A DNA stretch of 64,000 bases from contig OZ251228.1 in NCBI GenBank assembly GCA_965240325.2, positions 2,356,001 to 2,420,000 of the forward strand, given 5' to 3'. Every line of letters starts with the position of its first letter. Within the stretch, counting starts at the first letter, position 1. Shown one piece after another: positions 13,715 to 56,938 of the stretch. The notes beneath the pieces are model-generated. The model was given only the letters and a program-made list of their open reading frames with translations. It was not told where the DNA came from and made no database searches. Origin of the DNA: Rebecca billardiae RCC1528 (taxonomy: Eukaryota > Protista > Haptophyta). The position numbers and the translations under genes were made by a program.

Positions 13715-15169
13715 TCAACCAGCGCGCGTGGTAAAGTCGATCTGACCCACAGTCACCACGGGGAGCTCTGGCTCTTGCGGGAGCACCGACACGGACACTG
13801 GATCGTGAGGCTGATGGTGTCCCACCTGCGGGTGCATCGAGCCAGAGGGGGGGAATTCTTCGCCCACGACAATTGGTAGTAGCATTGGAGACACAGTCAA
13901 CTCGACTTGTGGCCAGCCTGTTGCATTGGCTGGCAGCGGAGCAGTGCTGGGCCTTGCACGCGCAGCACATGCAGGCCCATCGGCATCGCAGTGCTGCGCT
14001 CGGGGACGTTTGCTGGAACCGATCTGGGAGAGCATTGCGCCAGAGCTCTGGGCCACGTGAACGCCGCTGTTGCCATGTGACAGCGGAAGCATGCCGGCCA
14101 GCTTGTGCTCAGCGCACCGGCTGGCGCGCGCGTCGCCCGGCATGCCGAAGTTAGGCCGTGTGGTGCAGCCGGTGTGATCACACTTGCGGCTCCTCACGTC
14201 GACCATGCCAGCCAGCTTGTGCTCAGCGCACCGGCTCGCGCGCGCGTCGCCCGGCATGCCAAACGAAGGCTGCTTGGTGCAGCCGGCGTGATCACACTTG
14301 GAGCTCCTCACATTGACCATGCCGGCCAGCTTGTGCTCAGCGCACCGGCTGGCGCGCGTGTCGCCCGGCATGCCGAATGAAGGCCCCTTGGTGCAGCCGG
14401 TGTGATCACACTTGCGGCTCTTCACGTCGACCATGCCGGCCAGCTTGTGCGTTGCGCACCGGCTGCCGCGCGCATCACCCGGCATGCCAAATGATGGCTC
14501 CTTTGTGCAACCAGCCTCATCGCACTTGCGGGTCACCACGTTGACCATGCCGGCCAGCTTGTGCTCAGCGCACCGGCTGGCGCGCGCGTCGCCCGGCATG
14601 CCAAACGAAGGCTGCTTGGTGCAGCCGGCGTGATCACACTTGCGGCTCACCACGTTGACCATGCCGGCCAGCTTGTGCGTACCGCACCGGCTGGCGCGCG
14701 CGTCGCCCAGCATGCCGAACACAGGCTCCTTGGTGCAGCCGGTGTGATCACACTTGGGGTGCTTCACGTCGACCATGCCATCCAGCTTGTGCGTAGCGCA
14801 CCGGCTGGCGCGCGTGTCGCCCGGCATGCCGAACAAAGGCTGCTTGGTGCAGCCAGCGTGATCACACTTGCGGCTCACCACGTCGACCATGCCGGCCAGC
14901 TTGTGCGTTGCGCACCGGCTGCCGCGCGCATCACCCGGCATGCCAAATGATGGCTTCTTTGTGCAACCAGCCTCATCGCACTTGCGGGTCACCACGTTGA
15001 CCATGCCGGCAAGCTTGTGCTCAGCGCACCGGCTGCGCCGAGCATCACCCGGCATGCCGAATACTGGCAACTTTGTGCAGCCGGCCTCATCACAGGTTCG
15101 GCCATGGACGTTTGCAGCCATGCTTTCCTCAGCAGTCTGCCCAATAGTAAGGTTCGGGCCAGATAGCAT
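13715..15169 (-). CDS. EsV-1-7-type cysteine-repeat protein, 9 x 38-aa repeats (copy A)
   Basis: Repeats of CDHAGCTKxPxFGMPGDARASRCAEHKLAGMVDVxxxK (C-x4-C-x16-C-x2-H) match my recollection of the EsV-1-7 Cys motif. ATG at 15169 or 15121, unique C-terminus containing SKRPR. Confidence 0.85.
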   Translation of the reverse strand: MLSGPNLTIGQTAEESMAANVHGRTCDEAGCTKLPVFGMPGDARRSRCAEHKLAGMVNVVTRKCDEAGCTKKPSFGMPGDARGSRCATHKLAGMVDVVSRKCDHAGCTKQPLFGMPGDTRASRCATHKLDGMVDVKHPKCDHTGCTKEPVFGMLGDARASRCGTHKLAGMVNVVSRKCDHAGCTKQPSFGMPGDARASRCAEHKLAGMVNVVTRKCDEAGCTKEPSFGMPGDARGSRCATHKLAGMVDVKSRKCDHTGCTKGPSFGMPGDTRASRCAEHKLAGMVNVRSSKCDHAGCTKQPSFGMPGDARASRCAEHKLAGMVDVRSRKCDHTGCTTRPNFGMPGDARASRCAEHKLAGMLPLSHGNSGVHVAQSSGAMLSQIGSSKRPRAQHCDADGPACAARARPSTAPLPANATGWPQVELTVSPMLLPIVVGEEFPPSGSMHPQVGHHQPHDPVSVSVLPQEPELPVVTVGQIDFTTRAG

Positions 15170-15349
15170 CTCGCGCCGCGCGCGGCTTCATCGCCGGGGA
15201 TGCACACAGGTTTTGGCCGGCTAAAATTCTGTTCGGGCCGAAAGGAAAAAGGCGTGCGGAGCAGCAGGCTGAGGAAATGGGCAGGCGCTGCGTGCTGCTT
15301 CGTAATCCGTACAGCGCGGCAGGCGCCATCCTTTCCAGCGGCGACCGCC

Positions 15350-16282
15350 ATGGGGTGGCTCAACGCGCTCGGCGCTGCCGTCGCCACGTTTGGGCCGGTG
15401 GGCACGATCTTCGCGATGGTCGTGTACCCGCGCCCTTATCGGGTGATCCTCTCGCTGTCGAGCGCGTTCGCCTTCGCGCTCTGCGTGATGGCGAGCGGGC
15501 TGGTGTGGACGATCATCCCGCCGCTGCGGCAGCAGCTCGCCGTGCTCGCGGTGTACTCGACGGCCATCCAGGAGCTCGGCCGCTTCGGCATGTACGTGGC
15601 GTACGTGCGCTTGCAAAAGACGATCGCGACGATGCGCGGCATCTCCAGCCACAGCCTAGACTTCGCCGCCTCGCCCGCGCACGCGTTCATGGAGCGGGTG
15701 GCGTGCGCCACCGCCATCGGCGTCGGCACCGGCGCGACGCACGCCCTGCTCATCACGGGGCGCCAGCTGAGCGACGCCTCCTCGCCCGGGTCCTCGTACG
15801 TGCCCGGCTGCGCCATGTCCCAGTACGGCCTGGGCGCGCTCGTCGCCCTCGCCTTCGCCCTGCTGCACGTGGTGTGGACCATATATGCGTTTGTCGACGC
15901 GTACCCGCGCCAGTCCAAGGCAGGGGTGGGCCTCGTCGCCGGTGCGCGCGCTGCGGAGCGCCCCGCGCGCGCCGCGGTGGCGCCGGGTGGCCGCGTGGCG
16001 GGAACGCCCGGCGGCCAGCGGCACCCCTGTCGGCGCCGCGCTCTGCAAGCGCTCACTGTTGCGAGCGCTCGGACCCCCCCGCGCAACGTGCCGCCCGCAG
16101 GCTCACACCTCGCTGCCTCTGGGATCACTCTGCTGCACGCGGTCGACGGGAGGCCCGCCCTTCAGTGCGGTGGGCTGACGCTGCCGCTCCTGTACGTGGT
16201 GCTGATTGCGCTGTGCGCCGCGACCGCTCGTTCCGCTCTGTCCACGCTCCGAAAGCAAGGGCGCGCAGGGGGCATCTCATGA
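15350..16282 (+). CDS. APH1: Gamma-secretase subunit APH-1, exons 15350-15941, 16101-16282
   Basis: MGWLNALGAAVATFGP start, ILSLSSAF, IQELGRF, IGVGTG, ALLHVVWT and GSHLAAS motifs, multi-TM. 159-nt GT-AG intron. Confidence 0.88.
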   Translation: MGWLNALGAAVATFGPVGTIFAMVVYPRPYRVILSLSSAFAFALCVMASGLVWTIIPPLRQQLAVLAVYSTAIQELGRFGMYVAYVRLQKTIATMRGISSHSLDFAASPAHAFMERVACATAIGVGTGATHALLITGRQLSDASSPGSSYVPGCAMSQYGLGALVALAFALLHVVWTIYAFVDAYPRQSKAGVGLVAGARAAERPARAAVAPGGRVAGTPGGQRHPCRRRALQALTVASARTPPRNVPPAGSHLAASGITLLHAVDGRPALQCGGLTLPLLYVVLIALCAATARSALSTLRKQGRAGGIS

Positions 16283-55507: not shown

Positions 55508-55580
55508 ATATATATATATATATATATATATATATATATATATATATATATATATATATATATATATCTGATATATATAT
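55508..55580. repeat. (TA)n microsatellite
   Basis: Directly visible. Confidence 0.95.
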
Positions 55581-55900
55581 GTGCCCCCGGCAGTGAGTCA
55601 GTGCAGGCCGACGCTCAGTGACCGATGCCAGTCATGCCGAGCCGGAGCGGCAGCCTGGCAGCCGGCGCGCTGCTCATCGGCGGACAAAGTGGCACGCTGA
55701 CCAGCTTTCAAGACTGTGTGGCTGCATGCTGCGCAGCGGCGGCGCCCGGCCCGCGCCTGCGATCGAGTGGCGGCCGTGCGGGAACGGTCGGCCCGAGTTG
55801 CCAGTTGGTTGCTGCCGCGGAGCGAGGCCGCACAGCGAGCGAGCGGGGCCCAGCAACCTCGTCCGTGTCACTCATCGGCTCACTGAGACTTCACGGCCGC

Positions 55901-56938
55901 TCACCGTCCTTGCTCATCGCCATGAACGGTGCTGCTCGGGCCCGTAGGCCGTACCCGCCTGGCCATCACCACGGGTCGTACATGTGACGTCGTCGTTACG
56001 ATGCTGGCTGTGACCAGTGGCGGCAGCTGCGATCGCGGCCGCCGCGCTGCCACAACGTCCGAGGCAGTGGCTGTGCTGCTGGTGCGCTTCCGCTGTCGCT
56101 TGGCGGCGCTCACTTCTTTGGTGGTCACGACTTGCTCCAGCCCGCGCTTGTGCGCACCACTCCGAAGGCGCTTCATGCCGGCCAGCATGTGCGCAGCGCA
56201 CCGGCTGGCGCGCGCGTCGCCCGGCATGCCGTACGAAGGCTGCTTGGTGCAGCCGACGTGATCACACGTGGGGCTCCTCACGTCGACCATGCCGGCCAGC
56301 TTGTGCGTGGCGCACCGGCTGGCGCACGCGTCGCCCGGCATGCCGAAGTAAGGCTGCTTGGTGCAGCCGACGTGATCACACTTGCGGCTCCTCACGTTGA
56401 CCATGCCGGCCAGCTTGTGCTCAGCGCACCGGCTGGCGCGCGCGTCGCCCGGCATGCCGAACGAAGGCTGCTTGGTGCAGCCGACGTGATCACACGTGGG
56501 GCTCTTCACGTCGACCATGCCGGCCAGCTTGTGCGTGGCGCACCGGCTGGCGCGCGCGTCGCCCGGCATGCCGAAGTTAGGCCCCTTGGTGCAGCCGACG
56601 TGATCACACGTGGGGCTCCTCACGTTGACCATGCCGGCCAGCTTGTGCGTGGCGCACCGGCTGGCGCGCGCGTCGCCCGGCATGCCGTACGAAGGCTCCT
56701 TGGTGCAGCCCGCGTGATCACACTTGCGGCTCCTCACGTCGACCATGCCGGCCAGCTTGTGCTCAGCGCACCGGCTGGCGCGCGCGTCGCCCAGCATGCC
56801 GAATGAAGGCCCCTTGGTGCAGCCGGTGTGATCACACCTGGGACGCTTCCGGTCGACCATGCCGGCCAGCTTGCGCGCAGAGCACCGGCTGGCGCGCGTC
56901 GATATCGACCACCCTGGGTCGACCGAGGCCACCGGCAC
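55901..56938 (-). CDS. EsV-1-7-type cysteine-repeat protein, 6 repeats plus a leading half repeat (copy D)
   Basis: Uninterrupted ORF, same N-flank and C-tail as copy B but different variable residues. GTG start listed. Confidence 0.78.
   Translation of the reverse strand: MPVASVDPGWSISTRASRCSARKLAGMVDRKRPRCDHTGCTKGPSFGMLGDARASRCAEHKLAGMVDVRSRKCDHAGCTKEPSYGMPGDARASRCATHKLAGMVNVRSPTCDHVGCTKGPNFGMPGDARASRCATHKLAGMVDVKSPTCDHVGCTKQPSFGMPGDARASRCAEHKLAGMVNVRSRKCDHVGCTKQPYFGMPGDACASRCATHKLAGMVDVRSPTCDHVGCTKQPSYGMPGDARASRCAAHMLAGMKRLRSGAHKRGLEQVVTTKEVSAAKRQRKRTSSTATASDVVAARRPRSQLPPLVTASIVTTTSHVRPVVMARRVRPTGPSSTVHGDEQGR

Follow-up and report, generated by a model that had tools for sequence, protein, structure and literature searches.

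What do the proteins of four clustered genes, each carrying a tandem array of near-identical Cys/His repeats, recognize in the alga Rebecca billardiae RCC1528? The genes, labelled A, B, C, and D, lie on the minus strand of a 64,000-nt stretch of its genome (GenBank assembly GCA_965240325.2, contig OZ251228.1, positions 2,356,001-2,420,000), hereafter the window, within which all positions given below are numbered. We favour, with an even chance of being right, the view that they encode nuclease-free members of the EsV-1-7 family that would act as sequence-specific nuclear DNA binders, retuned by unit shuffling and hot-spot replacement. DNA targeting appears to be the likeliest role of the arrays, because their relatives, mostly on giant-virus contigs, join arrays to a Vsr/DUF559-like nuclease fold, and binding to DNA is favoured because the array precedes the nuclease in these relatives and because the window proteins are basic with tails resembling nuclear localization signals (NLS). 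Beyond the evolutionary pattern and the domain architecture, this answer is what we infer.

The open reading frame (ORF) list, Pfam matches and the unit pattern together delineate gene A (ORF of 484 codons, 13715-15169) and the open frames of gene B (345 codons, 38986-40023), gene C (612 codons, 47144-48982), and gene D (345 codons, 55901-56938). Regular-expression searching of the translations finds nine units in A (14069-15094), six in B (39238-39921), eleven in C (47396-48649), and six in D (56153-56836), all on the minus strand, making 32 units with a period of exactly 38 residues. The scaffold C-x4-C-x16-C-x2-H is present in 32 of the 32 units, and the 128 zinc-ligand residues are intact without exception. 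At the DNA level, Tandem Repeats Finder reports arrays with a 114-bp period and 8.8, 6.4, 11.4, and 6.4 copies in A, B, C, and D, respectively, with 85-93% matches, so that the unit count and the scaffold announced by an earlier, sequence-only reading of this DNA hold. Its assignment to the EsV-1-7 Cys-rich repeat family was likewise correct: profile (hidden Markov model) analysis reports hits with Pfam EsV_1_7_cys (PF19114) for all four proteins (E-values of 1.7e-129, 1.2e-91, 2.6e-160, and 2.4e-86 for A, B, C, and D), scoring 284-520 bits against a gathering cut-off of 25 bits and with 6-11 matching stretches per protein, and zf-C2H2 is not among the Pfam matches of the window proteins (E up to 0.01). 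According to published work, the EsV-1-7 domain is among the largest gene-family expansions of brown algae and includes the developmental regulator IMM.

The sequence-only reading had further proposed that variability is focused on residues 9 and 11 of the unit and that a few residues per repeat set the target, as in the transcription activator-like effectors (TALEs). Its lists of the residues at these two positions in A-D are correct letter for letter, as is its list of the codons used at position 9 (CAG, GGG, CGG, GAG, GTG, TTG, AAG, and CAT). Residue 9 is the most variable of the 32 units, with an entropy of 2.44 bits and eight amino acids, followed by residues 11, 35, 4, 37, 25, 33, and 38 (1.4-1.7 bits each), all remaining positions reaching at most 0.87 bits and mostly staying below 0.7. 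About eight positions therefore vary, not two. Codon 9 keeps a G at its third base, even in GGG and TTG, which are used nowhere else in the unit, which fits replacements made recently, in single steps, better than it fits long-standing neutral drift. It differs within five of the eight unit types, and on the unit tree it requires 12-15 amino-acid changes, as compared with 7-8 for codons 4, 11, 33, and 35 and an average of ~1.2 changes per site for third positions.

Each codon was then compared with the global silent rate by a Fisher test over ten disjoint pairs of close units. Codon 9 displays six replacements and no silent change (omega ~11, p 1.2e-4), codon 35 also six and none (omega ~11, p 9e-5), and codon 25 five and none (omega ~9, p 7e-4), while codon 11 displays one of each (omega ~2, not significant). 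The 29 scaffold codons exhibit a proportion of replacement differences (pN) of 0.006 against a proportion of silent differences (pS) of 0.020, that is a pN/pS of ~0.3-0.4, and the unit scaffold is conserved. Residue 9 is a genuine replacement hot spot, a status that it shares with residues 35 and 25, and residue 11 simply lacks constraint, its rate not exceeding the silent one. Of the claim that positions 9 and 11 vary above neutral expectation, the first half is thus retained (omega ~11) and the second dropped, silent and replacement changes being equal at codon 11. The remark that codons neighbouring codon 9 are mostly unchanged, silent sites included, does not hold for codon 11, changed as much silently as by replacement; codon 9 itself has no silent change. 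A TALE-like specificity carried by two residues is not supported, since at least three positions (9, 35, and 25) change faster than silent sites do and the predicted unit is devoid of helices.

Similar positions vary outside the window. Among 71 homologues possessing at least five units, residues 9 (1.77) and 11 (1.74) have the highest entropy within proteins, followed by 36, 35, 7, 25, and 24, and the same surface thus appears to vary family-wide, grading from position to position instead of showing two outliers. The closest relatives have Q, H, L, R, or I at residue 9 on a fixed scaffold, and the four zinc ligands are invariant across 555 homologous units as well. Among 755 units, the top mutual-information partners of residue 9 are residues 11, 25, and 35, at only 1-2 standard deviations, a weak signal.

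The recent history of the arrays is recorded in their flanks. A block of ~1.45 kb carries genes B, C, and D (38662-40110, 46827-48838, and 55577-56987, respectively, no strand being assigned), comprising in copy B the gene, ~325 bp on its 3' side, and ~90 bp on its 5' side; this copy is ~94% identical overall to the two others. The tails and 3' flanks of B, C, and D are 98.6-99.7% identical (99.3-99.7% for the 3' flanks alone), their 83-codon tails differ by 2-3 bases (pS 0-0.014), and the three genes are very young duplicates. Copy D abuts an (AT)n run (55508-55580) and directly adjoins the second copy (52393-55580) of a 3.2-kb repeat whose first copy (41063-44259) is 97.5% identical and also ends in (AT)n, again without assigned strand; the 3.2-kb repeat and the gene block form a loosely tandem unit. 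No Pfam domain was matched in the 3.2-kb repeat and neighbouring ORFs. Shorter repeats occur at 45524-45932 and 46400-46808.

When units are clustered into types at no more than five differences per 114 bases, their order reads c-a-f-f-a-d in B, c-a-g-g-h-b-a-h-b-a-d in C, c-a-b-a-b-d in D, and i-e-j-k-a-e-l-a-m in A. In gene C, units 5-7 recur as units 8-10 in a three-unit duplication, and four pairs of units are identical at the DNA level (C1 and D1, B6 and D6, C10 and D4, C5 and C8). Near-identical flanks and identical units, combined with arrays that nonetheless differ in length and order, are the mark left by unequal crossing-over or conversion. The arrays evolve like coding minisatellites, whole units being duplicated, deleted, and exchanged. 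The "own ordered code" previously ascribed to each gene is real insofar as the unit orders differ; it is, however, largely the product of whole-unit duplication and deletion, as the DNA-identical pairs indicate.

The proteins themselves are basic, with isoelectric points (pI) of 9.1-10.0 and each unit contributing a net charge of about +2.7. The basic tails claimed earlier are present on the minus strand, as a SKRPR patch in A (14000-14014) and as KRQRKR in B (39169-39186), C (47327-47344), and D (56084-56101). Gene A may start at 15167-15169 or, alternatively, from its second ATG (15119-15121). The frames of B, C, and D open inside a truncated, degenerate leading unit, whose conserved Met is the only in-frame ATG ahead of their arrays (39943-39945 in B, where it is the sole ATG; 48671-48673 in C and 56858-56860 in D, where it is the first; all on the minus strand). 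Starting from this Met, the three proteins begin with eight residues, M-V-N/D-x-K-x-P-K/R (M-V-N-V-K-G-P-K in B), and then unit 1. The intronless genes of the closest relatives, on two metagenome contigs, begin alike, with M-E-D/N-V-x-x-K-R followed by a unit, and the Met of the truncated unit is taken as the real start of B, C, and D because of this likeness. The predicted proteins would then likely comprise 319, 509, and 319 residues. Behind the arrays of A-D, the tails are low-complexity sequence.

With regard to the fold, an AlphaFold 2 (AF2) model of four units (predicted local distance difference test, pLDDT, 89) is free of helices, its only strands being short ones at residues 12-13, 22, and 32-33. 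Its weak fold matches are of the LIM, RING, PHD, and MIZ types. The best structural neighbour among reviewed proteins is a segment of Arabidopsis WRKY19 (residues 62-162), which is also weak (E 0.08), and the WRKY19-type zinc finger PF24906 co-matches EsV-1-7 units in some homologues.

The suggestion of a DNA target comes mainly from the relatives. A database search with protein A returns 554 proteins at E<=1e-5, the best of which are 40-59% identical, indicating that the proteins of this genome itself are absent from the database searched. About 100 of the 120 best homologues carry, after the array, a common domain of ~160-200 residues with two C-x-x-C pairs and the motifs R-P-D, E-x-D-E-x-x-H, and R-x-N-P-D-x-x-Y as invariants. 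The tails of A-D are unrelated to it. Its AF2 model (pLDDT 88.6; predicted template modelling score, pTM, 0.80) returns Foldseek hits in the Protein Data Bank (PDB) with the Hjc resolvase (probability 0.99), the R2 retrotransposon endonuclease, McrC, Bax1, and PspGI, and VIA-align reports a DUF559-type endonuclease (Z 7.9), the catalytic domain of the homing endonuclease I-Bth0305I (Z 7.8), and Vsr (Z 7.5). The closest clusters of the AlphaFold database (AlphaFold DB) are uncharacterised viral-metagenome and oomycete proteins (E 1e-19 to 1e-11), and more distant ones are annotated as Endonuclease, DUF2726, DUF559, NERD, and VRR-NUC. The best structural neighbours are thus restriction-endonuclease-fold nucleases. 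EDxHD is the published active-site motif of the Vsr-like homing endonucleases, from which the E-x-D-E-x-x-H of the fused domain differs. The predicted structure and the motifs indicate that the fused domain is probably a PD-(D/E)XK nuclease of the Vsr/DUF559-like type; the fold scores, individually marginal, agree with each other and with the motif.

This architecture is widespread. At least 559 viral-contig loci of IMG/VR encode the fused domain, many of them in metagenome-assembled genomes of giant viruses, and 56 of 68 fused-domain ORFs exhibit one to twelve EsV-1-7 units upstream in the same frame. In a library of 1.84 billion proteins, the domain matches at least 7219 clusters at E<=1e-3, and 75% of the top 148 carry at least one EsV-1-7 unit, with a median of five. 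Some family members without EsV-1-7 units bear other Cys-rich N-terminal repeats, and a few AlphaFold DB relatives of the domain have been auto-named C2H2-type. No published description of the fusion of array and nuclease was found in the literature covered, which was incomplete. Homing endonucleases, the R2 element, and engineered zinc-finger nucleases pair a DNA-targeting module with a nuclease domain.

The closest relatives of the window genes (58-59% identity) reside on two syntenic, gene-dense metagenome contigs of 66% GC, L001 and L002. In both, the gene of the ribonucleotide reductase small subunit is followed by an array-nuclease gene, with two array-only genes nearby. The nuclease domains of the two contigs are identical and their arrays differ in unit number, so the array dynamics appear to be the same as in the window. 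An ORF of 591 residues stands beside the array-nuclease gene (L002, 5209-6984; L001, 3495-5270; both on the plus strand) and resembles clusters labelled DUF8286/transposase by language-model features only (score 0.96); the same match set includes clusters of the Cas12f/TnpB type that are common in giant viruses. This neighbour may be Fanzor/TnpB-like.

If these observations are assembled, each protein of the window would consist of a short Met-led stub, 6-11 near-identical 38-residue units predicted to bind zinc, and a basic tail. Every unit would touch a short DNA segment, its hot-spot residues adjusting which sequence gets bound. Unit shuffling, together with replacements at residues 9, 35, and 25, could then retune specificity quickly, in the manner of PRDM9 and the KRAB zinc-finger proteins. 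In the alga, the nuclease-free arrays might serve gene regulation or might occupy the sites of related viral or selfish nucleases, both being possible. The nucleic-acid target put forward by the sequence-only reading has thus gained plausibility from the nuclease fusions of the relatives and the pI of 9.1-10.0, without the TALE-style code that had been attached to it. The antiviral or anti-transposon defence role offered alongside is pure speculation, and a PADLOC search for known defence systems returned no meaningful match. A wider proposal, which we find doubtful, is that the EsV-1-7 units constitute, after C2H2 fingers and TALE repeats, a further natural modular DNA reader: a unit of 38 residues would use residues 9, 25, and 35 (perhaps along with 11 and 36) to read a few bases, targets would be predictable and arrays redesignable, giant viruses would aim nucleases with their arrays, and the alga would keep fast-evolving nuclease-free arrays as regulators or as blockers of such nucleases.

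Several points weigh against DNA binding by A-D. The nuclease domain is absent from the window genes (tblastn over the whole window; best E 0.08, on the wrong strand), and the argument from fusion accordingly applies to them by homology only. In the relatives, the matches of the fused domain to solved structures are marginal (Foldseek E ~1e-3; Z-scores of 7-8 lie within the range possible by chance), and sequence and profile searches of Pfam, PHROGs, and the PDB did not recognise it, yielding noise only. Foldseek likewise matched the array model to no solved DNA-binding fold, no solved structure being returned at E<=0.001. As for the hot spots, conversion among units can move old variants and thereby inflate apparent rates at polymorphic codons, three silent sites, the third bases of codons 4, 11, and 24, roughly match codon 9 in diversity, and the sample amounts to 28 distinct units from one window. 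Genes B, C, and D stand in repeat-rich DNA with an ATG of internal type only. Lastly, the literature found gives no binding, structural, or expression evidence for EsV-1-7 proteins, whose function it calls unknown.

Part of this evidence would suit other roles. Were the arrays protein-binding scaffolds comparable to LIM, ankyrin, or leucine-rich repeats, the hot spots would recognise changing partners, for instance viral ones, and the viral fusions would recruit the nuclease to a protein. Many zinc modules do bind proteins, the weak fold matches of the array (LIM, RING, PHD, MIZ) are of this kind, and diversifying positions on a fixed scaffold are typical of protein-recognition repeats too; giant viruses, moreover, possess many repeat families whose presumed targets are host proteins. 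We nevertheless consider such a role unlikely, given the thousands of proteins in which the arrays stand on the N-terminal side of a nuclease fold, the strong positive charge and the nuclear-type basic tail, and a fixed 38-residue period devoid of spacers that fits tracking along a polymer. Another candidate target is RNA, as for the zinc fingers of the CCCH and RanBP2 types and the PPR and PUF repeats, since a basic charge combined with a modular period would fit either nucleic acid, and the fused domain counts RAP-domain RNA-binding proteins among its structural neighbours. Its best neighbours, however, are DNA endonucleases (Vsr, I-Bth0305I, DUF559-type, Hjc, and restriction enzymes), and its acidic active-site-like residues are invariant, which makes RNA binding very improbable in our judgement.

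A different objection is that A-D may do nothing at all, as inert leftovers of selfish array-nuclease genes, viral or transposon-borne, that lost the nuclease and were amplified passively, conversion keeping unconstrained sites polymorphic. The small duplicated block of B, C, and D beside the 3.2-kb repeat and the (AT)n runs, the nuclease domain missing from A-D in the tblastn search of the window, the lack of an ATG before the truncated unit in B, C, and D, the absence of any listed RNA run, and the frequency of long open frames in DNA this GC-rich would all fit. Yet decay is not what the arrays display: four long frames and 128 of 128 ligand residues are intact, the scaffold has a pN/pS of ~0.3, and codons 9, 35, and 25 lie above the silent rate instead of equalling it. 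Array-only genes that lack introns and begin with a Met in the same way also sit beside an array-nuclease gene on the closest contigs, and gene A is flanked by ordinary cellular genes, so that we rate inert remnants as distinctly unlikely.

The remainder of the window is eukaryotic DNA of mostly 62-74% GC with ordinary cellular genes. An Aph-1 homologue adjoins gene A, and elsewhere are found genes for a Sel1-repeat protein and for an FKS-type glucan synthase (best named algal relative, Prymnesium parvum, 36%). At 28881-32231 (minus strand), neighbouring ORFs contain HisKA, HATPase, and two receiver domains and probably make up a single hybrid histidine kinase, interrupted by an intron or a change of frame. 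In DNA of 81-87% GC, a 3023-codon open frame (3797-12868, plus strand) comprises 35% Ala, is rich in Arg and Glu, and exhibits coiled-coil-like runs, internal tandem repeats of 51-204 bp, and a perfect 27-bp repeat in five copies (11256-11395); either a real giant protein of low complexity or a mere composition effect could account for it. A 277-residue ORF (20504-21337, plus strand) possesses about four tandem Cys-rich units (periods of 174 and 354 bp) with a weak match to the hevein-type chitin-binding domain (Pfam Chitin_bind_1, E 3e-7), and a short ORF of contig L002 (123-509) starts with the same motif. A tblastn search of the window with the domain, for a hidden nuclease exon, was negative. 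No RNA run was listed for gene A. In the only public runs found, three of unspecified kind (X1-X3), short contigs match the unit sequence alone, none of them on the flanks of gene A, and they were dismissed for this reason as evidence of expression or orthology. Those of run X1 (2024), compared with 13300-16300, are 85-99% like single gene A units with nothing on the flanks, indicating that similar units exist in another sample or organism.

The role of EsV-1-7 proteins becomes testable through two features, the uniform arrays that focus variation on residues 9, 35, and 25 and the thousands of proteins, mostly viral, in which arrays precede a nuclease fold without a Pfam entry. Modular DNA reading, if true, would explain the EsV-1-7 family, define a widespread class of site-specific nucleases of giant viruses, and provide sequence recognition with a new protein scaffold. 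Otherwise, the locus remains a clear example, outside animals, of array evolution in the PRDM9 manner.

Set against known systems, A-D share with the EsV-1-7 family (PF19114; IMMEDIATE UPRIGHT of Ectocarpus, gene 7 from Ectocarpus virus EsV-1) the same tandem C-x4-C-x16-C-x2-H, and, like their brown-algal counterparts, the genes lack any further Pfam domain and form a tandem cluster. However, their host is not a brown alga, and their units (85-93% DNA identity) are far more uniform than those of known EsV-1-7 arrays, which lets the hot-spot positions stand out. The WRKY19-type zinc finger (PF24906) bears a weak structural likeness to the array, with a unit shorter than that of EsV-1-7. The viral relatives recall the Vsr-like homing endonucleases of the I-Bth0305I family and engineered zinc-finger nucleases in placing a modular zinc array at the N terminus and a PD-(D/E)XK/Vsr-like fold at the C terminus, and they occur in several copies per viral contig, one of them beside a ribonucleotide reductase gene; in contrast with these array-nuclease proteins of giant viruses, the window genes are devoid of the C-terminal nuclease domain. 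TALE repeats are likewise near-identical tandem units of 30-40 residues that vary at few positions, but they are helical, forming a superhelix of two-helix units, and vary at two adjacent residues, whereas the EsV-1-7 model contains only short strands, the hot spots 9, 25, and 35 of A-D are dispersed, and about eight positions vary. The C2H2 arrays of PRDM9 and the KRAB proteins are also coding minisatellites with gain, loss, and exchange of units on near-identical flanks, and combine an excess of replacements at few positions with a conserved zinc scaffold. Their fingers differ from the present units, which have no helix, C2-CH ligands spaced 4/16/2, 38 residues instead of 28, and a contact with DNA that is here presumed. 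In its mode of evolution, therefore, the array looks more like the PRDM9 type than the TALE type.

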